Sequence record: NC_061418.1
Reading direction: 5' to 3' (one strand)
Length of the DNA: 64,000 bases
Shown: positions 21,176-43,411 of the stretch, one piece after another
Numbering within the stretch: the first letter of the stretch is position 1
How the letters are laid out: the number at the start of each line of letters is the position of its first letter
The notes under the pieces: model-generated
Database searches by the model: none
Seen by the model: the letters and a program-made list of their open reading frames with translations, nothing else
What the model was told of the DNA's origin: nothing
Translations under genes and position numbers: made by a program

Positions 21176-21649
21176 TTAACCCTCGAACCGATAAACAATG
21201 ATTTCAAGATTGGTATCCTTAAAAGCCCGCTCAATGTTTTGGCGGACCATTTCCCAATCACCACCGGCCAGCCCGCATCCGATTAAAGGAAAACCAACTT
21301 TTAACGGCTTCTCTTCCTTTTTGAGAATCGATGCCATTATCTTCATTGCCAGATACTGTGCGCTATAATGCGTTTTATATCCCGGATCTGAATGGTCGTG
21401 GTGAAATTGGCCACAAAGATTGAAACCCCACTGCTCATCCTTTTTGGCGGCCGTTAATTTCCCCAATCTGTTTTTGACAGGGCGTTTGTCAGCAAAGTAA
21501 GGCTCAGCTATCCAGGGAAAAGCTTCGAAGATCTTAACAGCGATGCCACTCTTTGCGATCCCAAAGCAGTTTACTTGGTGGGCAATGACGTCGACTTCCT
21601 TATTAAAGAAAGCCTCAATCAAATCCCCTTTAATTTCGGTATAGGTCAT
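21176..21649 (-). CDS. Macrodomain protein (ADP-ribose binding/hydrolase, T4 Tk.4-like)
   Basis: IKGDL, IAHQVNC..GIA, FPLIGCGLAGGDW. Confidence 0.9.
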   Translation of the reverse strand: MTYTEIKGDLIEAFFNKEVDVIAHQVNCFGIAKSGIAVKIFEAFPWIAEPYFADKRPVKNRLGKLTAAKKDEQWGFNLCGQFHHDHSDPGYKTHYSAQYLAMKIMASILKKEEKPLKVGFPLIGCGLAGGDWEMVRQNIERAFKDTNLEIIVYRFEG

Positions 21650-21667
21650 TGCCCAAACTCTCCGTAT

Positions 21668-22282
21668 TTAATTGATGATAAACTTACAATCTTCGAGATG
21701 GTATTCTCGCCCGCCAAAACAAAGTTTCTTAACGTAGTTAGGACGAGGAAGATTAACGTTGTCCATGTAGGCATTATGGGAAACTAATGACTTGTTAATT
21801 ATTTTCCCTTTGTTGTATTCGACGAGTTTCCCTGGGTGTTCTTGGGAAAAGCCAAACCCTGAGAATTTCAACTTTACATGAGAATGAAAAGAGAGATTTC
21901 GCCAGCCTGGGAATTTCAACCCTTTAACGTGCGCGGCGATAAAACGAATCAGAGCGGTATAAATTTTACCCAGTTCGCTCACTGTCAGTCGTTCTTCTTC
22001 ATCGCCAAAACGGAAAATAATCTTGACGTCATGACCGTCCAGATTACGATGCCAGTCGATGATAAAACGAGAATAATAACCGTACAGTCCATTCTCGGCG
22101 ACAGTGCGGTTGCGATAGGTTTGTGCCGTCTCAGAGTCGTAACGATAGGCGCCTGGCTCCAAAGGCTGCCCGCGTCTGAAACCAATAAACTGTGCGAGCT
22201 GTACCGCTTGGATTAAAGTCAGGTGCACGGCGGTACCGAACTTGTTAGTGATAATAAAAATGGGACTTGAAGACGTATGCAT
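21668..22282 (-). CDS. Hypothetical protein
   Basis: TAATG-type overlap with upstream gene. Confidence 0.75.
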   Translation of the reverse strand: MHTSSSPIFIITNKFGTAVHLTLIQAVQLAQFIGFRRGQPLEPGAYRYDSETAQTYRNRTVAENGLYGYYSRFIIDWHRNLDGHDVKIIFRFGDEEERLTVSELGKIYTALIRFIAAHVKGLKFPGWRNLSFHSHVKLKFSGFGFSQEHPGKLVEYNKGKIINKSLVSHNAYMDNVNLPRPNYVKKLCFGGREYHLEDCKFIIN

Positions 22283-22887
22283 TAATTTGACTCCTGTAGT
22301 AGTTTGGCTATTTCAGTAACGAATTCGGAATGATCCTCTAATTTATCGCTACCGATCTCTGAACGTCTTATTTGATCATCGACATATTTAGAGATTAAGG
22401 CGTTGATTTTACCAGCTGGGCTGGAGAGAAATTCTTTTGATTCGGCGTAGTCATTATTCCAATGACGAATATAATACTCTGGAGAAAATCTTTCCGGCGT
22501 GTTGAAGTTTTGTAATTCTCCCTTTGCGAGTAACTTGAGGCTCTCTGAAAACAAAACATCAATACTGCGACCTGGGTAGTCATCCCTATAGCTAAATTGG
22601 ACGGAAATCGAAAATGTATTAATAACAGGGTGATCGCCACATCGTTCGATGACTTCCTTTTTCCAATTGGCTAAAGGCCCATTTTGTAAAGCGAATGTTA
22701 ATACATCCTCGGAAATAATCTCGTCACCATAGTGCTCTCGGTTGAAATTTTCGATTTTATCTGTTAATGACTTGAATAAATATGTTTGATTTGAACGAAT
22801 AAAAACCGGGTAATAATCATTAGTGATTAAGTCCCTTTCTTCCTGATTTAACGGCTCTTTAAGAAAACCGAGTTTTGTTCTTGACAT
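22282..22887 (-). CDS. Hypothetical protein
   Basis: Tiling ORF. Confidence 0.75.
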   Translation of the reverse strand: MSRTKLGFLKEPLNQEERDLITNDYYPVFIRSNQTYLFKSLTDKIENFNREHYGDEIISEDVLTFALQNGPLANWKKEVIERCGDHPVINTFSISVQFSYRDDYPGRSIDVLFSESLKLLAKGELQNFNTPERFSPEYYIRHWNNDYAESKEFLSSPAGKINALISKYVDDQIRRSEIGSDKLEDHSEFVTEIAKLLQESN

Positions 22888-22897
22888 ACCCTATCCC

Positions 22898-23302
22898 CTA
22901 ATTGAAATTAAACACTAAACGCTCAACACCTTTTGATTTAAGAATATTTAATTTCTCAAACCACTCTTCTCCAAGATGTTCTCGCCAAGTCGCTGTTGTC
23001 CCTTGTCCCTCAGGTAGAGTATCGTGACCGTCTCGGCGATCCTCCACTAACTGATCGTAATCAAACTCGAACAGATATTTTGTTTCCAGTGTGTAATTAT
23101 AGTCGCAGTCGTAATTAATTGGCTCTCCTGCCTTTTCCCACTTGTAAGGTAACGGAGGGACTCCGGCGTGGTTCCGGACATCAGCAAACCAACCGTAAAT
23201 GAAATAAGATTGGAAATCAAACCAATCTACACCGCCAGAGATTCCTTCCCACTTCCCATTTTTATTTTTCTTTTCAAACCGCCCGTAAATGTAAGCGCCC
23301 AT
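22898..23302 (-). CDS. Conserved phage hypothetical protein
   Basis: MGAYIY...KWE...QSYFIYGWFADVRNH resembles the recalled MGCDIH...RNY.LFA.LAGVRN phage family. Confidence 0.7.
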   Translation of the reverse strand: MGAYIYGRFEKKNKNGKWEGISGGVDWFDFQSYFIYGWFADVRNHAGVPPLPYKWEKAGEPINYDCDYNYTLETKYLFEFDYDQLVEDRRDGHDTLPEGQGTTATWREHLGEEWFEKLNILKSKGVERLVFNFN

Positions 23303-23303
23303 T

Positions 23304-23651
23304 CTATTTTTCCTCTACCTTGTAGTAAAGAGTAAGACCGTATTCGAAAGGATGTATCAAAGAGAGACTATGCCAGCAATTATCGTTTACAGGGAGCCCT
23401 TCTTCTGAGGCAGTGACTCCTTGTAGACGTTTGAGAAGACTGAAGAGAGTGTCGTTGTCGGTCTCATTCATCCACTCTTTAAGTTGAGACATCAGATTGG
23501 CGACACCGATAGTTAGCCTATAGTTAATAGTTGTAACATCCCGATCTTCTGGTGTTACTGTAACCGCCGCGACTTTTCTGTCCAGTAAGTCCATTCGAGT
23601 GTAAATAACTGCTAAATAAATTTTCATTAGTATCCCCCTTATTAAACACAA
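23304..23651 (-). CDS. Hypothetical protein (true start probably MKIY at 23627)
   Basis: GGGGG RBS precedes the internal ATG. Confidence 0.7.
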   Translation of the reverse strand: MCLIRGILMKIYLAVIYTRMDLLDRKVAAVTVTPEDRDVTTINYRLTIGVANLMSQLKEWMNETDNDTLFSLLKRLQGVTASEEGLPVNDNCWHSLSLIHPFEYGLTLYYKVEEK

Positions 23652-23676
23652 GGTGAGAGGAAAGACCCCTCACCTT
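23650..23676 (-). terminator. Intrinsic terminator
   Basis: aaggtgag/ctcacctt stem with inner G-C pairs. Confidence 0.6.
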
Positions 23677-23682
23677 TTTACC

Positions 23683-23997
23683 TTATTTTTGCCTGATACG
23701 GAGTTCGAGTTTAATCGATAAATCGTCACCGTCAGTTTCATCAAATGAGAGACTCCGCCAGATTCCTATTTCTCCGCCGTACGCGTAGAAATAAATCTCC
23801 CTTTCGAAAATAACGAAGAGCTTCTCAATAATCGCTGTTTCTTCATTCGTAAAAGCAAATGACGGAGAAAGCGATTCCGAACGATGTTTAGGTAGTCCCT
23901 GTAACAATTCTACGGAATCATTAAACTCCGTCGAAGTAACACCGGAGTGACGAGCGTGACCAACTACCAGACACGTTTCTAAAACGCACGTTGTCAT
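23683..23997 (-). CDS. Hypothetical protein
   Basis: ATGA overlap with thyA stop. Confidence 0.75.
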   Translation of the reverse strand: MTTCVLETCLVVGHARHSGVTSTEFNDSVELLQGLPKHRSESLSPSFAFTNEETAIIEKLFVIFEREIYFYAYGGEIGIWRSLSFDETDGDDLSIKLELRIRQK

Positions 23998-25373
23998 ACC
24001 GACACCTGTAATTTAATGGCTGGGTGATGCTTGTACTCAGTGAAGACGAAATCTTCATAGGTGAGTTCAAACAACCCTTTCTTCGGCATCTCTGAGTTAT
24101 AGTAGTGCTCAGAGCGAACGTAACACTCAACCGGTTTGTAAGGCTCGCGAGTTAACTGTAACTTCGCTTCCTCTAACTGATTATTGTAGATATGGACGTT
24201 AGTCAGATTACCAACCAGCTTATTGGGCGCCATACCGAGCTCATGAGCAAATGACAGCAACATGAAGGCGTAGAAAGCCTGGTTAAAGGGCTCACCGGTC
24301 ATTGTGTCACAGCTCCGCATACTGTATTTCAAACTCAGCCACTGCGTCGGTACGTGGTTCTCCGTCAACCATTCCGCTTTACGCTCAGGGGACATTTTCG
24401 GCTGGTCACAATGTTCTTCGCTGTAGCAGTCCGACATATGGTCTTCCCAAAGATCCTGGAAGTACGGGTTAGCATTGTTCCTGCACCATTTTAACCGCTC
24501 GCTCAATGTCATCTCTTCTACGTAGAACTCTACCAGGAAATGACACGGGGTAAGGCATGGTTTACCCTCCACAATATTTTCCTGCGGCGTAACCTTAACG
24601 GTCTTAGTGCGTGGTACACCATGACTTGCTAAGAACTCTTCGCAGTTATCGGTCTTGCCATGATATTCCAGGCGCGGCCAGAAAATAGCATAAAGGTCCG
24701 GACTGTGAGTTTTTAAATGTTCCCACATCTCGTCACTACTGAGAGTAACTTCTTTCGTTTCTTCCGGCATCCAAAGCGGGTTCCACGCCGAGATCAGGAT
24801 ACGACGCGATTCCGGATTGTTCCGTAGGAGATCGAGCGCATACGCGATTTGGTCAACGCCCTTCTTCTCTAATGGATTCTCGGAGAAGTTTCGCCATGCT
24901 GACCCGTAAGGGGCATTAAGGTCACCCGCTTTGTTCACGGTGACCTGGCGAGTACGCGGTACACCTTTTTCATCTAGCCAACGATGGCCGTCTTCAACAG
25001 GCTGAATGGAGATCCCTTTGCTGTAAAACTCGATGTGAGCTTCTTTGTTGTTCTCTTCAAGCCACTTCAGGCGCTCGTAGTTTTCCAGAGGAACTTCTTT
25101 CACCACGTCAGCTTCTAAACGCCACGGGTCCCAGAACTTGACATTATTCTCCACCATGGTATCGAGGTGGAGTTCCCCGTTTAACATTGCCTTGTACTCA
25201 AACCACGCAGATTTACGCGGAACGAACTTCGTGGTGAGCAGAGGGAATTCCCCGGTCGAAAGGTCGTACTTCAGTTTCGCATCAAAAATAGAAATCGTCC
25301 CCGTTCCCGTCCTGTCTCCTCGCTGACGACCGGTTTCGATAATTTCACGTAGTAGATCGAGATACTGTTTCAC
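23994..25373 (-). CDS. thyA: Thymidylate synthase with three repeated insertions
   Basis: DRTGTGT, FPLLTTK, NPESRRILISAWNP, PCH catalytic Cys, MRSCD, PFNQAFY, HIY. Confidence 0.95.
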   Translation of the reverse strand: MKQYLDLLREIIETGRQRGDRTGTGTISIFDAKLKYDLSTGEFPLLTTKFVPRKSAWFEYKAMLNGELHLDTMVENNVKFWDPWRLEADVVKEVPLENYERLKWLEENNKEAHIEFYSKGISIQPVEDGHRWLDEKGVPRTRQVTVNKAGDLNAPYGSAWRNFSENPLEKKGVDQIAYALDLLRNNPESRRILISAWNPLWMPEETKEVTLSSDEMWEHLKTHSPDLYAIFWPRLEYHGKTDNCEEFLASHGVPRTKTVKVTPQENIVEGKPCLTPCHFLVEFYVEEMTLSERLKWCRNNANPYFQDLWEDHMSDCYSEEHCDQPKMSPERKAEWLTENHVPTQWLSLKYSMRSCDTMTGEPFNQAFYAFMLLSFAHELGMAPNKLVGNLTNVHIYNNQLEEAKLQLTREPYKPVECYVRSEHYYNSEMPKKGLFELTYEDFVFTEYKHHPAIKLQVSV

Positions 25374-25812: not shown

Positions 25813-25840
25813 AAAGAGAGAGGGGAGTACCCTCTCTCTT
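25813..25840 (-). terminator. Intrinsic terminator
   Basis: aagagagaggg/ccctctctctt stem. Confidence 0.8.
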
Positions 25841-25843: not shown

Positions 25844-26440
25844 TTATCTACCTGTACGCTTATTTGTCCAAGAAGACAATCGTTTCAAATTATCTCGATG
25901 AACCAATAAATCACCCCAATTTTTCTCGGGAGAGTTATCACCAGATGTAGCTCTCTGGTAGGCATACATAATTTGCTCGTAAGAAACCTCTACAGGCATC
26001 CCGCCTGTCGCTGTGCAGAATAACGGCATAACGACGTTTTTTATCGCCCGATCTGGAGAAATACGGTTGAAATATTTTATCTGGCAAAAAGCAGCCAGCG
26101 CCGCGTGATATGCAATATCTTTACTTTTTGTCGGGCTAGGGAATCGCATCGTCGGTGCATAGCACAATTGAACTGCTTCACTCAGTGAAACGGTGATAGC
26201 CTGCCCCACTGGCATTTCTTTACCCCAGAATTGTTTGATGACCGTTTGGACAGTTTCTTGGGAGCGAGGAAACTTGTCCCTTACTACTTTGTCAAAACCA
26301 CCGTCCATAATACCAAACGAGTTACCAGGTGTAATAATGCAGTCGTAATCCTTACCCGGGACCATCGTTCTGAAATCCCGTTTTTCAAAATTTGGCCAGC
26401 TATCAAAGCCAGATAAATCAATTATCTTTAGATTAAACAT
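25844..26440 (-). CDS. Macrodomain protein (Appr-1-p processing family)
   Basis: IITPGNSFGIMDGGFD, YAPTMRFP, VVMPLFCTATGG. Confidence 0.9.
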   Translation of the reverse strand: MFNLKIIDLSGFDSWPNFEKRDFRTMVPGKDYDCIITPGNSFGIMDGGFDKVVRDKFPRSQETVQTVIKQFWGKEMPVGQAITVSLSEAVQLCYAPTMRFPSPTKSKDIAYHAALAAFCQIKYFNRISPDRAIKNVVMPLFCTATGGMPVEVSYEQIMYAYQRATSGDNSPEKNWGDLLVHRDNLKRLSSWTNKRTGR

Positions 26441-27366: not shown

Positions 27367-27390
27367 TCACTACTCCTTGAAAAATAAAAA

Positions 27391-27411
27391 GACGGAGGAA
27401 TAACCCCCGCC
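27391..27411 (-). terminator. Intrinsic terminator
   Basis: Minus strand ggcggggg/cctccgtc (G-U pairs) then tttttattttt. Confidence 0.7.
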
Positions 27412-27418
27412 TGATAAA

Positions 27419-27796
27419 TTAACAAATGACCGCGTCTACAAACAGCGCCGACATCGAACGGACTGGCGTAAGCGACTCTTTTAACGTAGGGAAGAATTTA
27501 CCTTCCGAACTGATGAATAAACACGCGCAGTCTACTTGACCCCGATTTATCCGCTGCGCCATTGCTAAGGTATTCGGTAACGGAATGACCTTGATCGAAG
27601 CGATCAATTTCGGTCCGAGGTAATCAGTAATGACCTCTTTGAATTTCGCGCGAGTCCGCGGGTCACCGTATACCTTTACGGTCTTACCCTTCATCAGGTT
27701 ATTCGCAATGAAAGCGGAATAATGCAACATCGCAGATTCGTTGAAGGTGCCTAACACTTTAATGGACTGGATTCGTTTCATTTTGTAAAAACCCAA
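27419..27796 (-). CDS. Hypothetical protein
   Basis: Tiling ORF. Confidence 0.7.
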   Translation of the reverse strand: MGFYKMKRIQSIKVLGTFNESAMLHYSAFIANNLMKGKTVKVYGDPRTRAKFKEVITDYLGPKLIASIKVIPLPNTLAMAQRINRGQVDCACLFISSEGKFFPTLKESLTPVRSMSALFVDAVIC

Positions 27797-28323
27797 TAAA
27801 CGTCGTAAAATGGAATAGCATGGATTCCCGAGGGGAGGTTGTCGATCTCTTCGATATCTTTCATATCGAGTAAATTGACAACTAACCCGGTGGATAATAA
27901 TCGCTTGAGGCTATACGCCACCGCACCAAGCGGAATTTCGAAGGTAATCGCCTTTTGACATTTGAAATGACTGACCAGTTTGCGCGGATTATCCGCTAAC
28001 CGTTCGAGATAATCTTTATACGTTTCCCCGTCGTGACCACGCAGCGGCCACTGCCAGATAATTCCGTCTGCGGCTACTATCGCCTCCCCTCGAAAACGAT
28101 AAGGATTTTGATATTGCTCCCATTTGAGATACCCCGGTTGGTACATAGAGCCGTGATCAAGGATCTCCAATTCTTTCCCTGCTATGGCTTCACGAATCAT
28201 TTCTGCAAGGGCCGGTATGAGAACAGTTTCCCCTGCGGCATTTTTACCAAGAGCGACCTTCTCTCCTTCCACTAAACCGTAGACGTCAGCCGCGTAAGCG
28301 CCCCGTTCAAACTTAAATTTCAT
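27778..28323 (-). CDS. Hypothetical protein
   Basis: ATGA overlap with kptA stop; GAGGAG upstream. Confidence 0.75.
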   Translation of the reverse strand: MKFKFERGAYAADVYGLVEGEKVALGKNAAGETVLIPALAEMIREAIAGKELEILDHGSMYQPGYLKWEQYQNPYRFRGEAIVAADGIIWQWPLRGHDGETYKDYLERLADNPRKLVSHFKCQKAITFEIPLGAVAYSLKRLLSTGLVVNLLDMKDIEEIDNLPSGIHAIPFYDVYWVFTK

Positions 28324-28883
28324 TCTTTTTTCTCCTCTACTTTAAAACACCCAACTGGAACATGTTCGACCAGCCAAACCCCGTTCAACGCTTTGTAGAA
28401 CACGTAGCCGCGTTCCAATAGTTTCTGGGTATCAATACTCAAGACTACGAGCGACCCTTTCTTAGCGTACCGTAATCCCACTAACCGCGCGGTCTCGATG
28501 TGATCGGTTAAATGGACAAACTGGCGGGATTGCGGATTGAGTCCATTCTCAAAAATACTCTCTAAATTCCCCGATGCAGTGCCGTGGTAAAGTACCTCAG
28601 GCGGTACCTCTTCATTGAAGGCCATTTCATTTACCGGGAATGAATGCCCCTGTACAGCACGGATAGAAGAAAGATCATCGGATAACCCAAATCGTTTCTT
28701 ATCGTCCGTCTCTACAACGTGCATAATTTCCTGTAACGTAACTACCTTATTCTGTTCAGAGAATGCTGCAATCAGGTCGTCGAGTCTGACATAGCCAAGT
28801 TCATCAGGCGTTAATTTCAAAGCCTGAGGCCGATGGCGTAAAATGAAACACAGTGTTTTTGATAACTTAATTGGATCGTTCAA
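28320..28883 (-). CDS. kptA: RNA 2'-phosphotransferase (Tpt1/KptA)
   Basis: SKTLCFILRH, DDKKRF, IRAVQGHS, LYHGT, RQFVHLT, NGVWLVEHVP. Confidence 0.92.
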   Translation of the reverse strand: MNDPIKLSKTLCFILRHRPQALKLTPDELGYVRLDDLIAAFSEQNKVVTLQEIMHVVETDDKKRFGLSDDLSSIRAVQGHSFPVNEMAFNEEVPPEVLYHGTASGNLESIFENGLNPQSRQFVHLTDHIETARLVGLRYAKKGSLVVLSIDTQKLLERGYVFYKALNGVWLVEHVPVGCFKVEEKKE

Positions 28884-28887
28884 ATTA

Positions 28888-29415
28888 TTACCCTTGGAGC
28901 GTATAACCTGCGCCGTAAACTTCGATCAATTGATCCCAAATAGGATCTACCCAAACGGGTACTTTGAACCCAAGATGTTCTTCTTCACGGTATAACCAGC
29001 CTTTCTTCTCGGTGAAAGAGAAGAAGTTATCTCTGCTCTTTTTAAGGTTATCGTAATAGGCAAACATTTTGTGGTCGGTCGCTTCTGCTTTATATTTCGC
29101 ATAAAGCCATTTACGGTATTGCGCTTCGATTTCAGTATATTCCACTGGCTCATACCCAGAAAGAATCGTCACACCACCCGTTGAATTCTCCGGGTAGCGC
29201 TGGAGTCCATCCCAAATAGCGGGTAGGGGGATAAAATCCCCTAATTCCCAAATATCGAACATGGGTGTCAGAACAGAGCGGGGTTCGTCCGGGCAAACAC
29301 TGAACGTTGCATTGCGGAACGCAGCTTCTTTATTTTCAGCGGCGATTAATAACACTGTCGCTTCTTTAGATTCAGGGAGATCGTAAAACTTCTCACTCGC
29401 CAGAAACAGTTTCAT
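28888..29415 (-). CDS. Hypothetical protein
   Basis: Tiling ORF. Confidence 0.7.
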   Translation of the reverse strand: MKLFLASEKFYDLPESKEATVLLIAAENKEAAFRNATFSVCPDEPRSVLTPMFDIWELGDFIPLPAIWDGLQRYPENSTGGVTILSGYEPVEYTEIEAQYRKWLYAKYKAEATDHKMFAYYDNLKKSRDNFFSFTEKKGWLYREEEHLGFKVPVWVDPIWDQLIEVYGAGYTLQG

Positions 29416-30121
29416 TGTTATTCCCCTGTGCAGTTAGGCCAAAATAATGACAACTACCTTGCGCAACAACTCGGTATTTTTTCGCGTGTGCCGCGCCTAA
29501 CGCAGTGTAAAACTTGAGATTGCTGATGTAGTCAATGTTTCTTTTCGTAAACTCTTCTCGTGACTGACCGAAGCGAATACCGATCTCTTGGTAAAGTCCG
29601 TTGAAGATGTCTTCATCGAGATAAGACATCGCGTAGAGTTGATCGGCGTCCCGGATAATGCCGAATAAATAACGCATACCGGTACCGCCGGGATACTGCG
29701 GAAAAGGGTCGTCGAAGTTATAATGCGTGAATCCGACTAATAAAGTGATCATCGCTTTGTTAGCCGTAGGAAACTCACGCCAGAAACCTAATTGCTCAAG
29801 TTGCTGTAAAGTGTACTCAATATTCTTCCAGTCATCTTTCTCTCCTAAGTGACAGAAATCGTGAACTAGTCCTGCGATGACGGCTGATTCAAAATCCTTC
29901 TCAGAGAGCCCGTAATTTGATGGCTCAAGATTGGAAAGAAGATAACCTGTCAGTACACCTACGCCAATTAAATGGCGTGTGGAGTGGTACGGTCGCCCTG
30001 CGTTGTGTTCTTCTACCCAGCGAATGATCCCATTGTAGTCATTGAAGAAACAACGTCCCCAGATCGGGTTCATTTCCTTCAGTCCGTAATTATCCCAGAA
30101 GACTGAGAACTCACTGTGCAT
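29393..30121 (-). CDS. HD-domain phosphohydrolase
   Basis: PYHSTRH, GLVHDFCH, IIRDAD. Confidence 0.85.
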   Translation of the reverse strand: MHSEFSVFWDNYGLKEMNPIWGRCFFNDYNGIIRWVEEHNAGRPYHSTRHLIGVGVLTGYLLSNLEPSNYGLSEKDFESAVIAGLVHDFCHLGEKDDWKNIEYTLQQLEQLGFWREFPTANKAMITLLVGFTHYNFDDPFPQYPGGTGMRYLFGIIRDADQLYAMSYLDEDIFNGLYQEIGIRFGQSREEFTKRNIDYISNLKFYTALGAAHAKKYRVVAQGSCHYFGLTAQGNNNETVSGE

Positions 30122-30827
30122 TTTTAACCTCGTTATACGCGTTGTTTACTGCCACCAACGTTTTGCTCACCGCCTCATTGTCTGGGAGAGTAAGCGGCCA
30201 GCTGGGGTGCATGTTGATGTAATATTCGTTCTCGCCAGGAGCGAAGACGATAAAGAATGTATGGTCAGCGTTCACTTCCGCAGAGAGCCGATTAATGGCG
30301 ATATTGTAATAGACCCGACACCCTGCTTTCTCTCCGACTGCCTTTAGTTTGTCTGGGTTGATTAATGGGTTGTTTAAGAAGGACTCAACTGTCCCTTTAA
30401 ACGGGAGAATATTCATTTCGCCGTTAGAGGAATCCGTCGGGCCGCGATACAGTTTAACGGCATCCTGACAATACTCTTCTACCCGATCGCAATACGTCGC
30501 AATCAACGCTTCAGGTACTGCCGAGAGTTTGTCGGTGAGTTTATCAATCAGTACCGCGGTATCGGCTTCATCTGACCGGACCATGATCATCGGAAACCAT
30601 TTATTCAGCAGACAGAAGAAACGGGGGTCTACGCCGTGATTAACGAGGTAAGAAACGAATTCACTGGTAGCGATCCCTGCCACCCAGCCGTAGGGCTTAA
30701 AGGTACCCGGAGGAGCCCAATCTTCATCAGACCAAAATTTACGGAGATAAAATTCGTCCCGTTTAAGACGTTGGATGAAGAAAGTGAACTCTGGTTTATG
30801 ATTCAGAAAACGTTCGATGAAATCCAT
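30111..30827 (-). CDS. Hypothetical protein
   Basis: Stop/start overlaps. Confidence 0.75.
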   Translation of the reverse strand: MDFIERFLNHKPEFTFFIQRLKRDEFYLRKFWSDEDWAPPGTFKPYGWVAGIATSEFVSYLVNHGVDPRFFCLLNKWFPMIMVRSDEADTAVLIDKLTDKLSAVPEALIATYCDRVEEYCQDAVKLYRGPTDSSNGEMNILPFKGTVESFLNNPLINPDKLKAVGEKAGCRVYYNIAINRLSAEVNADHTFFIVFAPGENEYYINMHPSWPLTLPDNEAVSKTLVAVNNAYNEVKNAQ

Positions 30828-31276
30828 TATTTATCCTCGAGGTGAAAACGAATTTTAAAGACGGGATAATCAGTGATCTCGTCTTCATTGAGTAAAAGGA
30901 TGCGAATAGCTTTGATATTAAAGCCGAAAATCAATTTGAAATCTATAGCCTGCTCTTCACAATACGTAGTGCGACAGACATTATTCGAAATGAGATCGTT
31001 ATCGGGATTAACAAACAAACAATTCTCCGGCAATTGACAGTCTACCCCACGATAGCAAATCGATAGAATCTCTAGACGGGTTATTTTTCTGTCGACAGGA
31101 AGTTGGTCTCTAAGCTTGTAAATCTTGTCTTTATCAACGATGAGATCAGCGTAGTCGAGTTTAGGTCCGAATAGGTTAAGGGTTATTTCTTCATTCAACA
31201 GTCTATTGATCTCGAAAACTTTTACTTTATCAGAAATATCCCTTTTCAAGATTTCTTTAATTTTTTCGATGGACAT
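30827..31276 (-). CDS. Hypothetical protein, first gene behind early promoter 5
   Basis: AAGGAG RBS. Confidence 0.8.
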   Translation of the reverse strand: MSIEKIKEILKRDISDKVKVFEINRLLNEEITLNLFGPKLDYADLIVDKDKIYKLRDQLPVDRKITRLEILSICYRGVDCQLPENCLFVNPDNDLISNNVCRTTYCEEQAIDFKLIFGFNIKAIRILLLNEDEITDYPVFKIRFHLEDK

Positions 31277-31357: not shown

Positions 31358-31385
31358 CTTCCTCTCTCCCGAAGGAGAGAGGAAG
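31358..31385 (-). terminator. Intrinsic terminator with cUUCGg loop
   Basis: 12-bp stem cttcctctctcc/ggagagaggaag. Confidence 0.85.
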
Positions 31386-36382: not shown

Positions 36383-36429
36383 AAATTAAACCCTCCTTTC
36401 ATTCAGAGCAATTGACGAGAAAATAAAAA

Positions 36430-36451
36430 AGGAGAGGCAAAAGCCTCTCCT
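36430..36451 (-). terminator. Intrinsic terminator ending nadR-pnuC unit
   Basis: aggagaggc/gcctctcct stem, ttttttattttt tail on minus strand. Confidence 0.85.
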
Positions 36452-36456
36452 CTCAT

Positions 36457-36756: not shown

Positions 36757-37197
36757 CTATTTTTCAGGCGGTAGGCCGTTATTAAAACGGTTCGCTTCCA
36801 TCACCGGGAGATTCGCTTCTGTCGGGACGTAGATCACTTGGTTCTTAGTTTGCTGTAAGCTATCTACCCAAAGGTAACGGAGATACGCTTCGTTGTTCTT
36901 CAAGCTGTCACCAATGATCTTGTTCGCCTTGGCGACACCGCCTGCACGAATAACCTCTGCCTCCGCCAAACTTTTAGCGGACTCTTTCTTAGCCTCTGCT
37001 TCCTGTACGGCGATCTGACGATCCTGCGTGGCTTTCATCAGAGCGGCTTTCCCCGCCATCCCCTGCTGCCAAACATTGTAGTACGGGCACCCCGCCATCA
37101 GCAGCACTATAAACGCAACAATGCCGATGGCCGCCCATTTACCCACCTTCTTTAATAACGACTTTACGTCGAAATCATTATCAGCGTAACGATTCAT
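36757..37197 (-). CDS. Membrane-anchored coiled-coil protein of a widespread phage family (resembles SPFH/band-7 C-terminus)
   Basis: TM then AEAKKESA...AEVIRAGGVAKANKIIGDSL...YLRYLW...IYVPTEANLP. Confidence 0.75.
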   Translation of the reverse strand: MNRYADNDFDVKSLLKKVGKWAAIGIVAFIVLLMAGCPYYNVWQQGMAGKAALMKATQDRQIAVQEAEAKKESAKSLAEAEVIRAGGVAKANKIIGDSLKNNEAYLRYLWVDSLQQTKNQVIYVPTEANLPVMEANRFNNGLPPEK

Positions 37198-37227: not shown

Positions 37228-37917
37228 TTATTTGTTGGTTTTGGTGATATACCACTTCCAAAGGCCGTAGAAAGCATTCATCAAGAATACTGCCCACTGT
37301 GCCACCTGCGCCCATGAACCCGGTTGATTAAGCGCCGGGATCACCCACAGATAAATCGTGACGCAGTTGATAATGATCCAGAGAATCCATTGTTCTGGCT
37401 GCTGCTTGATCATCATCCACATGGCGATGAGCGATGCGACTAAGCAGAACGCGTCTAATGCAGGAAACGGATCCTGCGTAGTTTTCAGGTATTCGGTCAG
37501 GCCATACCAGAAGATAACCCCAACAACCAGATAAGTTATCACGTCACGTAAAGTGATCGTTTTAACCGCTACGTCAGCTTTGGCTGGAGTTTTGCCCAGG
37601 TCTTTCGTCCAGTAATAAATACCGATAAACTGCATGGGAAGGTAAATAGCGTTCAACGCCGCATTGGCATAAAGGCCGGTATTGTACGAAACAATACCGT
37701 AGGTAATTACGCCAATCGTCCCCCAGTAATAATTAGAGACGCGACCCTTCGCCACCAGAATCACGCAGACGACGTTAGTCAGCGCTGCCGTGAATTCTAA
37801 CGGACTGGCTTGCCAGCTCCCTAATCCGACGACGATTAACGCTACGATCAGCCAAAAGTATTCGACTTTCTTCCAGTGCGCAAAGTCAGTGAAAGTTTTC
37901 ATTACCAATGAGTTCAT
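37228..37917 (-). CDS. pnuC: Nicotinamide riboside transporter PnuC
   Basis: Multi-TM; CVILVAKGRVSNYYWG, YLPMQFIGIYYW, DPFPALDAF, EQWILWIIIN. Confidence 0.92.
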   Translation of the reverse strand: MNSLVMKTFTDFAHWKKVEYFWLIVALIVVGLGSWQASPLEFTAALTNVVCVILVAKGRVSNYYWGTIGVITYGIVSYNTGLYANAALNAIYLPMQFIGIYYWTKDLGKTPAKADVAVKTITLRDVITYLVVGVIFWYGLTEYLKTTQDPFPALDAFCLVASLIAMWMMIKQQPEQWILWIIINCVTIYLWVIPALNQPGSWAQVAQWAVFLMNAFYGLWKWYITKTNK

Positions 37918-38061: not shown

Positions 38062-39273
38062 TCATCCACCCCAATCAGCGGGGTTCTGATGAGAACCAGC
38101 CTCGATGCTTTCTACCATACTCCAATCTTTATCAAAGTTACCACCGCTGGCAGCAGGAGGGAACTTATTTGGAATTTCTGGAGCGCTCTGGCCGGCAGTG
38201 CCGTTACCGGATAACAAGTTATCAACCGCTTCACGTGATTGATCTAAACGACCTTTGTAAGAGTCCCCTTTAATGAATACAGTGCGCCCCCATGGTGTTT
38301 GGTTTTTAAATTCCCAAAGCATTTGTTGGAAGAGACTCTCTGTTTTCTCGCGGTCAGGATTCAGCCGCAGACCATCATCGACCCATGGTACTTCCGGCGA
38401 AAGAATCAACACGAGATCGTAATGCTCTTCAGCCGCGATAGCAGAAACAATAGGGTTAGGTTTACCCTCGTACAGCCGATGGTAATATTCCGTAATGAAG
38501 GCGTTCGTATCGATGAAACAGAGTCGATTAGAAGTACGTAATGCTTCCTCCTCCAGCTCTTTGTGACGATACGCAATCAACGGGTAGTCAGAACTACGGA
38601 GAGTCGCTTCCGAACCCGCTAAGACCGTTTCACAGTACGTACGGCCGTACTCTTCAACCCAGCTGGTATTGTAGAGTTTGGCGAGGTTCTTGACGAGGGA
38701 ACTTTTCCCAGAACTCTCAACGCCTAATACGACCACCCGCAAACAATAATCTTTACGGACAATGCTCGGGAGATATTCCCAATGGTCGTAAAGGTTTTCA
38801 CGGATCATCGTGGCGGAGATGGGGACGCGGGTACGGTTACTGTCAACGATAACGTGTTCTACAAAACCGAGGTGCGTTTTGTATTTTTCATCGTAATCCA
38901 GCTCGCTACTGAAAATAGCAATGCTCTGCGCCTGACTGTGATTAGCTGCCAGTCTACCTGCCTCGTTGAAAATCTTAGCGCCGAGCAGAGCAGCGTATTC
39001 TTTCCAGCCGTTCGGGTATTCCGGTACAGAAGCCTCATCAATGAAATCGATCGTGACGTGCTCTGTATCCGCGTAAGTCTGTTGCAGCCAGCGCAGACGA
39101 TTCTTGAAATTGAGTACCTTTTGGTCTCGTGGCGATTGTTTATCCAGCCAACGTTGGTCGTGGGAAAGAATGACGAGGACATGCTTAGACTGCACAGCAG
39201 CCTCTGTGATTAAGTTGATGTGCCCCAACGTAAGGGGTGCGAATTTACCGATTACTACGCCTAAGTCAAACAT
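38062..39273 (-). CDS. nadR: Bifunctional NMN adenylyltransferase / ribosylnicotinamide kinase NadR (no N-terminal HTH)
   Basis: GKFAPLTLGH, Walker A GVESSGKS, EYGR, FIDTN, PWVDDGLR. Confidence 0.93.
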   Translation of the reverse strand: MFDLGVVIGKFAPLTLGHINLITEAAVQSKHVLVILSHDQRWLDKQSPRDQKVLNFKNRLRWLQQTYADTEHVTIDFIDEASVPEYPNGWKEYAALLGAKIFNEAGRLAANHSQAQSIAIFSSELDYDEKYKTHLGFVEHVIVDSNRTRVPISATMIRENLYDHWEYLPSIVRKDYCLRVVVLGVESSGKSSLVKNLAKLYNTSWVEEYGRTYCETVLAGSEATLRSSDYPLIAYRHKELEEEALRTSNRLCFIDTNAFITEYYHRLYEGKPNPIVSAIAAEEHYDLVLILSPEVPWVDDGLRLNPDREKTESLFQQMLWEFKNQTPWGRTVFIKGDSYKGRLDQSREAVDNLLSGNGTAGQSAPEIPNKFPPAASGGNFDKDWSMVESIEAGSHQNPADWGG

Positions 39274-39291
39274 CTGATATACCCTTCCTTA

Positions 39292-39606: not shown

Positions 39607-39619
39607 GTTTTAGTTTCCT

Positions 39620-40012
39620 TTATTCGGTCCAGGGACGGAAAGTCCATGTACGAACTTTGTATTTACGATTATCAAAACGACGGCTACGGATATAGACCTC
39701 TACAGTTAAACTCGTTGCCGTTGGGGTGAGAAAAACAACCAGGTGTGCGGGTTCGTACTGGTACACCTCCGCTAAAGAAACAAACGCCGAGAACGGCAGA
39801 CTTTTCTTTTCAGCGGAACGGAGATTCCGATAGAGCAGTTTCACTGCGCGTTTAGCGAACACCTGGTCGTGGTAACTGGCGTGACGGAGACTTTTCCGAT
39901 TAGCGTTTAACTTCATCAGAAACAAACGCTTCTCCGCCCATGGGAGGTAATAGCTCAAACTGATCCCTGCCCCAGAAAACAATATTGCTGATAGTGTTTT
40001 CATTAACGCCAT
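39620..40012 (-). CDS. Membrane-anchored hypothetical protein
   Basis: N-terminal hydrophobic segment, basic soluble part; AGGAG RBS. Confidence 0.75.
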   Translation of the reverse strand: MALMKTLSAILFSGAGISLSYYLPWAEKRLFLMKLNANRKSLRHASYHDQVFAKRAVKLLYRNLRSAEKKSLPFSAFVSLAEVYQYEPAHLVVFLTPTATSLTVEVYIRSRRFDNRKYKVRTWTFRPWTE

Positions 40013-40025
40013 TAATTTTCTTCTC

Positions 40026-40268
40026 CTATCGTATATCGTTGTTGTCTTTCTTGAACGGGTTATAGATGTTCAAGTACCAAACCAACCCGACGAATATTCC
40101 GATGCAGATAAAAGGCCATGCAATACCAATTGTCAAAACCTTCCAGATCTCCATACGGAGGACGACGCGGCGATACTTGGGGTTAACAATTGGTTTCCAA
40201 ACAATCATCAGAAACACAACCGCCCAGAGCGCCCCGCCGGCAGATATCAACATTCCCGCTGTACTCAT
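40026..40268 (-). CDS. Small two-TM membrane protein
   Basis: Two hydrophobic helices, IAWPF motif. Confidence 0.75.
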   Translation of the reverse strand: MSTAGMLISAGGALWAVVFLMIVWKPIVNPKYRRVVLRMEIWKVLTIGIAWPFICIGIFVGLVWYLNIYNPFKKDNNDIR

Positions 40269-40579
40269 GACTTCACACCTACCGTTAAAAGGAGGGTTCG
40301 CAGGTAATCCGCATCCGGGTTGAGTACAACACTGAACCGACTGTTGTCGTGAATCAGAATCAAATCACCAGGATAAAGAACTGCGGTGTGATTTCCGTCG
40401 TACACGAAATTCAAGGTCGCGTAATCTAACGCGTCTTGTTCAGGAAACCGTGGCGTGACGGGTGGTTCATTCAGGATATCGGCGGCGGGGTCGCCTGCCA
40501 GGATACGTAAGAACCCGTTGTACTCAGTCGGAACAATAGGGAGTTCCACATATTTCAGTTCAATCACGTGCGTTAACAT
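40265..40579 (-). CDS. Hypothetical protein
   Basis: GAGGTG RBS; YPGDLIL motif. Confidence 0.75.
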   Translation of the reverse strand: MLTHVIELKYVELPIVPTEYNGFLRILAGDPAADILNEPPVTPRFPEQDALDYATLNFVYDGNHTAVLYPGDLILIHDNSRFSVVLNPDADYLRTLLLTVGVKS

Positions 40580-40596
40580 GATTCACCTCTTTATCG

Positions 40597-41091
40597 TTAG
40601 TTATTAAAGGATCGAAAGAATTCGTTGCCGTGTTTAACCCCGTCGAGAATGTCGTTACAGAGCTTTGGTATTTGTCTGATAACTAGGATATCCATAATCT
40701 TGAAATCGGCACAGTGGATAGCCCGGAGTTTTTCATAAGCGAGATCACCTTTAAGTGAACGCGTAATGCCGAGGAGATCACAGGTGTTTGTAACAGGGCA
40801 AAGAGAAAACCAACCTTGCTTTGCGTAGGTGTCAAAGTCCATGATTAGTTTTCTTAGACCGACTTCTTTAAACGGGTCATTACCCGCTGAGGGCCAGTTG
40901 ATAGCCCTGGTTAACGGGTGAAGCGAATTTAACCAGAGAACGAAAGGGTCCGACTCTTCATAGGTCGCGTTTTCAGGAGCAAGATTACTCAGCGCTGTTC
41001 CGTTACCAATGCCGCTAAATTGTTTCTGATTTTCCATCGTTACCTTATCCACACCCGTCGCAAAGACTTTACCAAAAAATTTAATAAGCAT
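40597..41091 (-). CDS. Hypothetical protein
   Basis: Tiling ORF; AYEKLRAIHCADF. Confidence 0.75.
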   Translation of the reverse strand: MLIKFFGKVFATGVDKVTMENQKQFSGIGNGTALSNLAPENATYEESDPFVLWLNSLHPLTRAINWPSAGNDPFKEVGLRKLIMDFDTYAKQGWFSLCPVTNTCDLLGITRSLKGDLAYEKLRAIHCADFKIMDILVIRQIPKLCNDILDGVKHGNEFFRSFNN

Positions 41092-41351
41092 TAGAGCCCC
41101 TCGGTTGAGAACATTTTTAACCCGTGTCGATAGTGAACGCGGTTTTTCAATAGATGACCCATCTCAGCACATTTTTTCAGCCTGGTCGCAAGTAACGTTT
41201 TCCCCATCCGGCGTGGCGCTGAAATTGTGAGATTACTGTCTAAATCATCAAAATAGGGTTTGGATACTTTAATGAGGAAAATATGGTTGGCGGTGACGGA
41301 ACTTCTTTTCAGTTTCCCTCTCTGTATTTTCAAACATTTTTTCAAGGCCAT
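41091..41351 (-). CDS. Small basic protein with isolated Walker A-like motif
   Basis: ISAPRRMGKT, no Walker B; AAGGAG RBS. Confidence 0.6.
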   Translation of the reverse strand: MALKKCLKIQRGKLKRSSVTANHIFLIKVSKPYFDDLDSNLTISAPRRMGKTLLATRLKKCAEMGHLLKNRVHYRHGLKMFSTEGL

Positions 41352-41360
41352 AGCGTCTCC

Positions 41361-41486
41361 TTATTCTAGTGAATCATAGAGCTTCTTACCAATAGCAAAC
41401 AGTATCTTAAGTATCGCACCGGAGATGTACCAAGCACCACCGTAACAGAAGATTACGAAGATAACGATTTTCCATTCTACTGGCAT
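41361..41486 (-). CDS. 41-aa membrane peptide (not in ORF track)
   Basis: Hand translation MPVEWKIVIFVIFCYGGAWYISGAILKILFAIGKKLYDSLE; GGAGGT RBS. Confidence 0.8.
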   Translation of the reverse strand: MPVEWKIVIFVIFCYGGAWYISGAILKILFAIGKKLYDSLE

Positions 41487-41516
41487 AGTACACCTCCGGT
41501 ATTTAAGAAATAATAA

Positions 41517-41544
41517 CTGAGAGAGGGCATTATCCCTCTCTCAG
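41517..41544 (-). terminator. Intrinsic terminator
   Basis: ctgagagaggg/ccctctctcag stem, ttattattt tail. Confidence 0.75.
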
Positions 41545-41548
41545 TCGG

Positions 41549-42175
41549 TCAATATAAGTTTTCGGAATAAAGTTCGTTGTTAATAATGATAACGTTGGGA
41601 CGTGTGGCGTTAATTTGTCCGGCGTGTTTCGCAATGACAAACGCGTCTTCTCGATTCCAATAACGATCCCATTGATCGATAAACCCTTGTCCGCTACCGT
41701 GCGGGAAATTGACAGGTTCTTCACCTGCCTTTGCTCGGAGGCGTTTGATCTCATCGCCGAGGATATGCTGTAGAAGCGAACCGTGGCGCGAAGAAGGAAT
41801 GACCAAAGGCTCTTCTTCTTTTAACCCCAGTGCTTCTCCGAGTCTTTCATTCGGTTTCACTGTTCCCCAGATATTTGCCGCTGAAACGATACGGACCTGA
41901 ACAAAGATACCTGGTGACGGCTCGTGTACGCAAATAGCCGGGAGGGTTGCTCTTTGTTCTTCAGTGAGTACTTCGTCATCAGCGTAGCCTTCCTCTTTAC
42001 GGAAATGAGATTCGGCTAATTGACACGACGCGAGGATATCCATGGCCAATTTGCGAGCAGAGTCGATATCAAACTCGTACTGCCCGCTCTTTAACTGAAT
42101 AACCTTATCATCGCGAATGTCGTAATCGCGGATATCTACTCGACTGTAGTCACCTTCATGAATCATTTTAGTCAT
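41549..42175 (-). CDS. Phage protein with conserved C-terminal domain of unknown function
   Basis: RH...QGFIDQWDRYWNREDAFVIAKHAGQI...LYSENLY pattern recalled from many phages. Confidence 0.75.
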   Translation of the reverse strand: MTKMIHEGDYSRVDIRDYDIRDDKVIQLKSGQYEFDIDSARKLAMDILASCQLAESHFRKEEGYADDEVLTEEQRATLPAICVHEPSPGIFVQVRIVSAANIWGTVKPNERLGEALGLKEEEPLVIPSSRHGSLLQHILGDEIKRLRAKAGEEPVNFPHGSGQGFIDQWDRYWNREDAFVIAKHAGQINATRPNVIIINNELYSENLY

Positions 42176-42458
42176 TAAGATTCTTCCTCAAGGAAAGTTT
42201 CTGTCCCAGTTTGAGGGTGCGGATCGGAAGTTCGATTGACCCACACGCATTGGCGATAATGGTTCCTGTCGGTGTTCCGACCACCGCAGTGAATTCATCG
42301 GGATGTTTCTCAATCAACCCGATGCTGGCGGAGAACAGATCTTCATCGCGCGCGAGTAGATGTAAATCAGTTTCACTTACGATGTCGCCGATGTAAGGGT
42401 AATTTGGATTGCGGTCATAGGCGACAGTTGGAGACTGCTTGACTTTCTTTGCCGACAT
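42168..42458 (-). CDS. Hypothetical protein
   Basis: TAATG overlap with sspB stop. Confidence 0.75.
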   Translation of the reverse strand: MSAKKVKQSPTVAYDRNPNYPYIGDIVSETDLHLLARDEDLFSASIGLIEKHPDEFTAVVGTPTGTIIANACGSIELPIRTLKLGQKLSLRKNLND

Positions 42459-42886
42459 TATTCCTTCCCTCCGGAGATAACCGAAAATGGGTTTGGTTTC
42501 TTAGTTTCTTTTACCGGTTCAGCGGGTTCGTCAGAACGCCCGTCAGCAGTGATGAGTTTTTGCGGGAGTTGAATCATCTGTTCCGGGTTATCAGGGTTAA
42601 ACATCTGAATGACGGACCCCCACGGGAAAGTGTCTGAGGCGAGTTTACCCCCGAAACGCCCTTCGAAGAACAACCCTTCGTCCAGTGAAGAAAGCTGACA
42701 GGAATGCGGAGAAACATTCAGTGTCAATACGTGATAACCCTGCATGTTAGGTACCGGTTTGACATATTGACGAAGAATGGGATTCACGGTGATTTCGGTA
42801 CCAAAGACCGTGATGTAAATACGACTGCCATTATCGATAAGCCAGCTATAACCTGCATCAAACAACGCTTTATTTAAAGAAGACAT
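42458..42886 (-). CDS. sspB: SspB-like ClpXP protease adaptor
   Basis: YSWLIDNG, LTLNVSP, FEGRFGG, FPWGSVIQMF parallel E. coli SspB (YEWLLDN, IVLNIAP, FNARFGG, VPLAAVLAIY); tail PNPFSVISGGKE. Confidence 0.85.
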   Translation of the reverse strand: MSSLNKALFDAGYSWLIDNGSRIYITVFGTEITVNPILRQYVKPVPNMQGYHVLTLNVSPHSCQLSSLDEGLFFEGRFGGKLASDTFPWGSVIQMFNPDNPEQMIQLPQKLITADGRSDEPAEPVKETKKPNPFSVISGGKE

Positions 42887-42915
42887 GTGTTACTCCCGAT
42901 TGTTATTTAATTACC

Positions 42916-42942
42916 TTCACTCAGGTGATATAGATTTTAAAA
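42916..42942 (-). promoter_or_regulatory. Phage early promoter 7 (inside 3' end of NADAR-like gene)
   Basis: TTTTAAAATC-TATATCAC-CTGA-GTGAA. Confidence 0.85.
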
Positions 42943-43411
42943 GCCGTCGAGTTTCTTCCCAAAACTCCACTAACCATTCTCCGCTTTTAGGCGTAACAAC
43001 TTTAACGTCGTCTTCCCAGACACGCGCCCCTTTCTCCATTCGCCAATTACCGAAAACGTAGTAATGGGTAAAAGGTAGGGTTGAATTGACCAGCGCTTGG
43101 TATTGGTGTTTGTAAGTATTCAATTTCGCCAGATTAGCAGCTTTGATAATCGAGAGGAAATCGGGATGATGAACCACTTCCAGTTTCTTCCCAAATGCTT
43201 TCGCCTCGTTACCGTACAAGCCTCTGAGGTATTGGTGTTTAAAACCGGTTTTTGCGTAATACCAAAACCCTTCCATACTTTCAAAGTTTCCGTACTCAGG
43301 GTGAATGAAAGGTGTCTTTGGAAAGTGAGAGAGAAAGAACCCGAGACGGTTCTTGGACTTAGAGTAAATGTTGATGTGGTCAATACCGTCATTGTTTGGG
43401 TTCAAAGTCAT
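42917..43411 (-). CDS. NADAR-superfamily protein (T4 gp30.3-like)
   Basis: LSHFPKTPF...FESMEGFWYYAK, GLYGNEAKAFGK, ALVNS..FTHY parallel recalled T4 gp30.3 LSNFAQWPF...LEGFLQGCK, GLSGLAAQQAGR. Confidence 0.7.
   Translation of the reverse strand: MTLNPNNDGIDHINIYSKSKNRLGFFLSHFPKTPFIHPEYGNFESMEGFWYYAKTGFKHQYLRGLYGNEAKAFGKKLEVVHHPDFLSIIKAANLAKLNTYKHQYQALVNSTLPFTHYYVFGNWRMEKGARVWEDDVKVVTPKSGEWLVEFWEETRRLLKSISPE

Follow-up and report, generated by a model that had tools for sequence, protein, structure and literature searches.

Klebsiella phage KpLz-2_45 (MN871446 / NC_061418, 296.7 kb, genus Siatvirus) harbors a loose group of six genes whose products deal with nicotinamide adenine dinucleotide (NAD+) and ADP-ribose. 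The stretch of DNA analyzed here, called the window, comprises 64,000 nucleotides and corresponds to bases 1-64000 of the phage record, which means that coordinates in the window are also coordinates in the record. Here, gp039 and gp047 encode two macrodomain proteins, gp052 the RNA 2'-phosphotransferase Tpt1/KptA, gp068 and gp069 the transporter PnuC together with a NadR protein, and gp078 a protein of the NADAR fold (Table 1). Over the 23-kb stretch with these genes, the window is 100% identical to bases 21000-44000 of the record. An earlier reading of the DNA letters, referred to as the original prediction, had placed the six genes at these positions; all six are located on the minus strand. 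Its six domain calls are right, since sequence matches were obtained for five of the proteins and the NADAR fold for gp078.

KpLz-2_45 is a chimallivirus-type, nucleus-forming phage, since it encodes a protein clearly homologous to PicA, the nuclear importer of PhiKZ (E 8e-27), an annotated PhuZ tubulin and split multisubunit RNA polymerases. For chimallin, a BLAST search of KpLz-2_45 with PhiKZ gp054 gave nothing convincing (E 0.4 in gp315). From about 0 to 50 kb of the genome every gene is located on the minus strand and the genes are densely packed. The region is also present in ten near-identical relatives as well as in the Maaswegvirus phages FBKp24 and Centimanus, and the paper describing the FBKp24 genome makes no mention of these genes.

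Table 1. Coordinates of the genes and sequence features of KpLz-2_45 discussed in the text.
Feature	Position	Strand	Basis or remark
gp039, stand-alone ALC1-class macrodomain, SCO6735 (Gln) type	21176..21649	-	phrog_335 1e-41
gp047, probable Macro-2 (yeast Ymx7/YMR087W-like) macrodomain	25844..26440	-	PDB 1njr E 9e-6; PF14519 under cut-off
gp052, Tpt1/KptA NAD+-dependent RNA 2'-phosphotransferase	28320..28883	-	PF01885 E 3e-43; NCBIfam 4e-58
gp054, HD-superfamily phosphodiesterase-like hydrolase	29393..30121	-	two genes upstream of Tpt1
Seven-gene unit gp056-gp050, reading frames overlapping or abutting	27419..31276	-	holds Tpt1 and HD hydrolase gp054; hairpins on both sides
gp068, transporter of nicotinamide riboside, PnuC (NARP3 component)	37228..37917	-	PF04973 E 3e-43; TIGR01528 above cut-off
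gp069, HTH-less NadR, NMN adenylyltransferase and ribosylnicotinamide kinase (NARP3 component)	38062..39273	-	PDB 9x6f E 3e-142
gp078, divergent NADAR-fold protein, distant relative of T4 AdfN (gp30.3)	42917..43411	-	AF2, Foldseek and hhalign
Hairpin, unit boundary between gp044 and gp043	23650..23676	-	11-bp stem and T-rich tail
Hairpin closing the Tpt1 unit at its 3' end	27390..27412	-	9-bp stem, then T-run
Hairpin directly upstream of the Tpt1 unit	31358..31385	-	12-bp stem
Hairpin, 3' end of the NadR/PnuC unit	36427..36454	-	12-bp stem and T-run
Hairpin, between the gp078 unit and the NadR/PnuC unit	41515..41546	-	13-bp stem
gp334, AdfM/DarG2-type macrodomain, outside the window	198039..198482	-	annotated hypothetical
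gp205-gp206, NARP1-like pair, outside the window	291032..293673	-	Prs-family gp205, then Nampt-family gp206
gp027, AAA+ ATPase	13422..14738	-	
gp035, AAA+ ATPase	18722..20101	-	BCS1-type N-terminal domain
gp045, thymidylate synthase homologue	23994..25373	-	Pfam match in two stretches
gp067, directly downstream of PnuC	36757..37197	-	phrog_11227 ('protease') 1e-60; no Pfam family

For the pair gp069 and gp068, an experimentally characterized counterpart exists. The NARP3 system of Escherichia phage TrudiRoth consists of Bas30_86 and Bas30_87, which import nicotinamide riboside and convert it to NAD+, and has been shown to overcome the defense systems Sir2-HerA and DSR1 (Sci Adv 2026, PMC13464706). 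Crystal structures of Bas30_86 are available (9X6H and 9X6F). gp069 is 61.9% identical to Bas30_86 and aligns with 9x6f across residues 2–354, and gp068 is 45.7% identical to Bas30_87. Within gp069, a CTP_transf_like domain (residues 7–159), the nicotinamide mononucleotide (NMN) adenylyltransferase, is followed by an AAA_28 domain (residues 179–323), the kinase, with the Walker A motif at residue 184. The NCBIfam NadR model PRK08099 is matched only from model position 65 onward, hence gp069 is devoid of the helix-turn-helix (HTH) region. In both phages the two genes are adjacent on the same strand in the order NadR then PnuC, and in both the NadR protein has no HTH and has kept the NMN adenylyltransferase and kinase motifs. 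The two modules also differ: in KpLz-2_45, the genes are separated by a 144-nt spacer and the NadR has about 45 additional C-terminal residues, and KpLz-2_45 is a chimallivirus-type myovirus of roughly 300 kb, whereas TrudiRoth is a T5-like siphovirus.

From its sequence, the pair is a clear orthologue of the NARP3 module, and by homology it is expected to convert nicotinamide riboside into NAD+ and to restore the NAD+ pool. The proposal that these genes resupply NAD+ is thus in agreement with a characterized module in gene order, domain content and sequence. Since the pair is orthologous to the published Bas30_86/87, it belongs to biology that had been described before. A gp078-like gene beside the NARP3 genes of TrudiRoth was also considered, and none is present within the 40 kb examined. 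The near-equal Salmonella counts of gp078-like, NadR and PnuC matches are due to Vi01-like phages, which carry the gp078-like gene. Directly downstream of PnuC and in the same unit lies gp067, which matches a PHROG family annotated as protease.

The product of gp078 on its own has no sequence match in Pfam, NCBIfam or the PDB. An AF2 model based on a 28-member alignment reached a mean predicted local distance difference test score (pLDDT) of 96, and the three best PDB folds retrieved by Foldseek are all NADAR proteins, namely YbiA (2b3w, template modeling (TM) score 0.62), PnNADAR from Phytophthora (8bau) and the G. lovleyi NADAR (8bat). With the Pfam NADAR model PF08719, just one of the 28 relatives gives a match (E 0.068), and the family profile meets the PDB sequence of 8bau at no better than E 0.18. 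Homology to T4 gp30.3 is visible on sequence level: ten of the 28 relatives weakly match PF08010, and hhalign aligns the family profile with T4 gp30.3 over 89 columns (94.5% probability, E 8e-8). T4 gp30.3, called AdfN, is the NADAR with which phage T4 frees guanine in DNA from the ADP-ribose attached by DarT1, and its residues E36 and K43 are essential (PMC11257639). In the alignment these fall on E47 and K54 of gp078. E47 is shared by no fewer than 90% of the family members. The K54 column holds lysine in 9/28 and lysine or arginine in 15/28 members, so the catalytic lysine is not a family-wide feature.

Like AdfN, gp078 is a small stand-alone protein of a large myovirus, displays the NADAR fold and has both catalytic residues aligned. 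In contrast, homology to AdfN is visible only across about 90 N-terminal and central residues, and gp078 belongs to a separate family without a Pfam NADAR match. This family comprises 516 phage records, which stem from Vi01-like phages, Vibrio phages and a number of jumbo-phage genera; annotations as YbiA, DUF1768 or NADAR are found for a few of them. In one relative, a fusion with DUF4326 is present, which is a reported fusion partner of viral NADAR domains (PMC9503650). A close kinship with the other validated phage NADARs was rejected, as the comparison gave 5.6% for the Bas60 type (no detectable similarity) and 54% for the Bas32 type (weak). Based on sequence and model, our reading of gp078 is that of a NADAR which is AdfN-like but divergent. 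As an eraser of guanine-linked ADP-ribose, the role given to it by the original prediction, it is now backed by the alignment of E47/K54 with E36/K43, and hydrolysis of this modification on DNA is plausible.

For gp039, the score with the Pfam Macro model is 20 bits at a cut-off of 22. In the PDB, matches at about 1e-5 were obtained to SCO6735 (5e3b), which is the closest solved structure, TARG1 and DarG macrodomains, and the best match in NCBIfam and PADLOC is the macrodomain part of DarG (about 1e-11, far under the family cut-off). The active site points to a distinct type. Aligned with PhiKZ AdfM, N27 and Q81 are invariant in 121/121 family members, and N27 occupies the column of DarG N22 and AdfM N23. 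The column of the catalytic lysine (DarG K80, AdfM K78) contains lysine in 0/121 members, with tyrosine, phenylalanine, histidine or other residues instead; the one-residue register that separates the lysine from the glutamine column is taken from low-identity alignments. N27 and Q81 also align with the H-x-x-N and G-Q motifs of 5e3b. SCO6735 likewise has no catalytic lysine and depends on Gln85 and Asn27; it efficiently strips thymidine-linked ADP-ribose from DNA and acts on proteins as well (PMC9411070).

Since asparagine and glutamine are invariant and the lysine column never holds lysine, as is the case for SCO6735, gp039 is classified as a Gln-type ALC1-class macrodomain with Q81 at the place of the essential Gln85. 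It has the ALC1-like class and the conserved asparagine in common with DarG2 and AdfM. In contrast, it is devoid of the catalytic lysine of DarG2, TARG1 and AdfM and is 22% identical to AdfM. gp039 is a probable ADP-ribosyl hydrolase, whose substrate could be thymine-linked ADP-ribose on DNA as for SCO6735, ADP-ribosylated protein, or Appr-1''-p (ADP-ribose-1''-phosphate) as for yeast Poa1. The family, phrog_335, occurs in 2811 phage records, and a literature search found no experimentally tested member.

The second macrodomain, gp047, probably belongs to another clade, Macro-2. Residues 31–171 match the yeast protein Ymx7 (1njr), the sole solved relative, and the Macro_2 model PF14519 is matched over a short stretch (E 4e-5, 23.5 bits at a cut-off of 27). 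In NCBIfam an ADP-ribose-binding protein is matched at 3e-6. Compared by BLASTP, gp039 and gp047 meet only at E 0.01 across 39 residues, and are therefore not paralogues, in line with the earlier statement that both macrodomains are unrelated. For the Macro-2 clade, the Appr-1''-p phosphatase activity of the pathway that handles the by-product of tRNA splicing has been described, without an activity removing mono-ADP-ribose, and Poa1 sits in the ALC1 clade (PMC6397177). Judged from this relationship, gp047 is a probable ADP-ribose-1''-phosphate phosphatase. The relation to Ymx7 and the presence of a Tpt1 gene in the same arm resemble the Ymx7/Poa1 pathway. It differs in the low identity and the Pfam score under cut-off, in the absence of a detected 2H cyclic phosphodiesterase, and in the location of gp047 and Tpt1 in separate units. 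The gp047 family comprises 45 phage records and is missing from Centimanus. With PADLOC, no match was obtained for gp047, gp078, Tpt1 or gp054.

The Tpt1 protein gp052 matches solved Tpt1 enzymes from end to end (best PDB entry 7kw8, 1e-40). R16, H17, R64 and R120 align with the four essential active-site residues of RslTpt1 from Runella slithyformis (PMC6097658). As a full-length protein with all four of these residues, gp052 is, by this comparison, catalytically intact. It is encoded in a seven-gene unit, of which five products are orphan reading frames (ORFans) without a match in Pfam, PHROG or the PDB. The remaining one, gp054, has invariant H46 and H87-D88 residues, and its AF2 model (pLDDT 86.5) resembles the domains of class-I cyclic-nucleotide phosphodiesterases (Foldseek, TM score 0.55–0.60) as well as phage HD phosphohydrolases in BFVD. 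gp054 is a candidate associate of Tpt1 only, and it could act by degrading either a cyclic-nucleotide signal or some cyclic phosphate. Motifs of 2H proteins, P-loop/polynucleotide kinases or ligases were not found among the neighbors of Tpt1. A counter-defense role of a phage Tpt1 was not found reported in the literature.

Outside the window, two further elements of the same theme are present. A whole-genome search with PhiKZ AdfM (gp104), a chimallivirus anti-DarT2 factor (2026), identified gp334 as the third macrodomain of KpLz-2_45, located about 155 kb from the genes in the window. gp334 is 35% identical to AdfM (E 4e-26), reaches 128 bits with the DarG model, and contains both the asparagine and the lysine. 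By these features it is a genuine AdfM/DarG2-type macrodomain and the AdfM orthologue of this phage. The label 'DarG-type', previously given to the macrodomains in the window, does not apply to gp039 with its glutamine type or to the probable Macro-2 protein gp047. The canonical eraser of thymine-linked ADP-ribose was missing from the genes listed by the original prediction; it is the AdfM-type protein gp334, encoded outside the window.

The second element is formed by gp205 and gp206, the latter 593 amino acids in length, which overlap by 4 nt. NARP1 (2024) has an architecture of Adps and Namat, which convert ADP-ribose to NAD+, and by gene order and family assignment gp205-gp206 appears NARP1-like. 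In FBKp24, one minus-strand array holds both the pair and, without a break, the gp039 orthologue, with the pair about 30 kb upstream. This unbroken order means that base 1 of the KpLz-2_45 record is arbitrary and that the NARP1-like pair is contiguous with the window.

With respect to their organization, the six genes are split over five units bounded by strong, terminator-like hairpins in intergenic positions, namely gp078, NadR with PnuC, Tpt1, gp047 and gp039. About 34 genes in between have no related domain, and the sole recognizable one among them is a thymidylate synthase homologue. A scan for sigma-70 promoters was uninformative (17 sites versus 19.3 expected, and 23 versus 21.6 expected). 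The five units lie within 21.8 kb, and uniform random placement was as tight in 32/200000 trials. A purine-rich stem of the GAGAG...CTCTC type is common to the hairpins starting at 23650, 31358, 36427 and 41515 and to two further ones at 25814–25840 and 45407–45430, which suggests a conserved family of terminators or regulatory stem-loops.

Among 50,697 phage records, the families are found at very different frequencies: gp039 in 2811, NadR in 738, gp078 in 516, PnuC in 403, Tpt1 in 98 and gp047 in 45. Outside the Siatvirus/Maaswegvirus clade they co-occur, among the matches listed, just in scattered cases and at large distances. In Ea35-70, the position of Tpt1 (68 kb) is remote from that of the gp078-like gene (113 kb), and the gene pairs of RTH11, FLC9 and LR756500 are likewise unlinked. 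For gp047 and Tpt1, LR756500 is the only overlap outside the clade among these matches. A patchy, independent distribution in relatives had been named as a finding that would speak against a common programme. In part, such a distribution is indeed observed, namely outside the clade, where the genes are independent and unlinked.

We conclude that these modules accumulate under related selective pressure. The account that we consider fairly probable is that independent modules of known types have piled up in one accessory arm and do not form one integrated programme. Their independence is supported by the five units with about 34 unrelated genes in between, the differing frequencies, the missing linkage outside the clade, the lack of gp047 in Centimanus, the RtcB gene of FBKp24 that has no counterpart in KpLz-2_45, and the distance of about 155 kb to the AdfM-type gene. 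A theme is common to the modules, and probably also an early expression class. Functionally, PnuC would import nicotinamide riboside, which the HTH-less NadR would phosphorylate and adenylylate to NAD+, offsetting NAD+-depleting defenses. Where DarT1-type toxins have attached ADP-ribose to guanine in DNA, gp078 would most likely cleave the N-glycosidic bond, and gp039 would act as an ADP-ribosyl hydrolase. Tpt1 would remove 2'-phosphates from RNA and consume NAD+ in doing so. Its by-product, an ADP-ribose cyclic phosphate, could be turned into ADP-ribose via gp047 and possibly gp054. The NARP1-like Adps/Namat pair and the AdfM-type gp334 would add to this set from outside the window, and the separate units would be gained and lost independently of each other.

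Several observations weigh against this modular reading. The hairpins that define the units are pattern matches only, and transcriptional read-through is common in phages. When random placement is restricted to the accessory arms, the five units in the window are still tighter than random (429/200000, about 0.002), and genome-wide six of the seven units lie inside 47.5 kb (795/200000). Between two genera with a nucleotide identity of about 80%, gene order and content are kept. A parallel loose NAD/ADP-ribose island is present in the 357-kb jumbo phage BF of Serratia, which is unrelated: less than 10 kb on one strand (record 256367–265998) contain NadR, PnuC, a gp078-like gene and the gene of an ARH hydrolase. 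Furthermore, Macro and NADAR domains co-occur above chance in DNA viruses and have been reported from early regions (Iyer et al., PMC9503650). The tight clustering, the synteny and the analogous island, together with the common theme, would fit one dispersed, coordinated programme as originally proposed, in which NAD+ is resupplied and marks are erased from thymine by the macrodomains, from guanine by the NADAR and from RNA by Tpt1. NARP3, the AdfN-like protein and the ALC1-class erasers each have experimentally proven relatives, and together with the NARP1-like pair and AdfM outside the window many such functions are indeed stacked in this phage. Nevertheless, we regard one programme as clearly unlikely: the genes sit in five hairpin-bounded units among unrelated ORFans and are distributed independently outside the clade, the Macro-2 clade, to which gp047 probably belongs, has no known de-ADP-ribosylating activity, Tpt1 has no known role in counter-defense, and the canonical DarG2-type eraser is encoded elsewhere in the genome. 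At the other extreme, the grouping might be pure coincidence, the domains being common in jumbo phages and the six genes in 22 kb reflecting a crowding of accessory genes in the arm. This would be in line with the arc that contains all seven units including gp334, which spans 142 kb and is not significant (16419/200000). Coincidence appears somewhat unlikely given the result of the arms-only placement and the parallel island of phage BF.

A further reading concerns the Tpt1 and macrodomain genes, three or four in number, which would serve RNA repair and be unrelated to ADP-ribosylating defenses. Here, Iyer et al. assigned phage KptA together with 2H, Macro and NADAR proteins to RNA repair (PMC9503650), which fits to the intact active site of Tpt1, the tRNA-splicing Appr-1''-p phosphatase function of the Macro-2 clade, the position of Poa1 in the ALC1 clade and the six tRNA genes of the phage. 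In addition, a true RtcB ligase is encoded by FBKp24, the sister phage (PF01139 4e-120, record 174955–176199), located between the counterparts of gp031 and gp032 and 6 kb upstream of its gp039 orthologue, which represents a difference in gene content between sister genera in the same arm. In KpLz-2_45, RtcB is absent from the whole genome by tblastn. As a candidate, gp031 was rejected, since it shows no RtcB signal and is the homologue of FBKp24 gp184, the neighbor of RtcB. Moreover, RtcB is not known to make 2'-phosphate junctions. No RNA ligase, polynucleotide kinase or 2H enzyme is annotated genome-wide in KpLz-2_45, where about 250 hypothetical proteins were not scanned for remote folds, so that, in contrast to a complete Tpt1 pathway, an annotated ligase that would create the 2'-phosphate junctions is lacking. 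The Tpt1 neighbors likewise offer no such motifs, and gp047 and Tpt1 are located in different units and, among the matches listed, are rarely found together in phages. On balance, the RNA-repair reading is possible, if doubtful.

An integrated version, which we consider very improbable, would be a closed ADP-ribose economy split between compartments, a recycle-and-erase system of this chimallivirus lineage broader than any described single module. Here, AdfM (gp334) would clean thymine-linked ADP-ribose inside the phage nucleus, and the targets of gp039 and gp078 would be other marks, or their place of action the cytoplasm. Free ADP-ribose would be obtained from RNA 2'-phosphate and ADP-ribose cyclic phosphate by Tpt1, gp054 and gp047, the NARP1-like pair would return it to NAD+, and NARP3 would top up the pool from external nicotinamide riboside.

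The general idea of a jumbo-phage NAD+/ADP-ribose programme is already published. A viral NAD+-ADP-ribose network of jumbo phages, including NAD+ synthesis against NADases, was laid out in 2022 (Iyer, Burroughs, Anantharaman, Aravind, PMC9503650), and the same concept was published for gut jumbo phages in 2024. In that network, stand-alone Macro, NADAR, KptA and NadR genes of early regions are found together in large myoviruses above chance, which KpLz-2_45 resembles. The KpLz-2_45 lineage differs in that it joins Tpt1, a NADAR and macrodomains of three clades with NARP3 and a NARP1-like pair in one genome, and no description of this exact combination was found in the literature. Every unit has a described counterpart, namely NARP3 (2026), NARP1 (2024), AdfN (2024), AdfM (2026), SCO6735 (2022), Macro-2/Poa1 and Tpt1, and no new kind of system is revealed. 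The new elements are modest. NARP3 is now seen in a Klebsiella phage of chimallivirus type, two phage families are added, one AdfN-like and divergent and the other of Gln-type macrodomains, and all of these are stacked in one genome.

Within these limits, putative functional names can be given to genes mostly deposited as hypothetical, namely gp039, gp047, gp054, gp078 and gp334. The range of NARP3, for which the published survey contained just one Klebsiella phage (PMC13464706), is extended to chimallivirus-type Klebsiella jumbo phages. In one lineage, two NAD+-rebuilding routes are stacked with a NADAR eraser and with macrodomain erasers that represent three clades, which indicates a strong pressure from NAD+-depleting and ADP-ribosylating defenses in Klebsiella. 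Furthermore, two large phage families are brought forward for characterization, the Gln-type macrodomain family phrog_335 and the gp078-type NADAR family.

Some features of the surroundings should be mentioned. The AAA+ ATPases gp027 and gp035 flank a stretch upstream of gp039. In the RefSeq record, one DNA primase fragment gene outside the window is marked as frameshifted once. With 459 amino acids, gp045 is of unusual length for a thymidylate synthase homologue, and its Pfam match in two stretches implies a large insertion or extension. Glycosyl- and glucosyltransferases are encoded near the other end of the genome and, together with gp045, make a DNA base modification conceivable.

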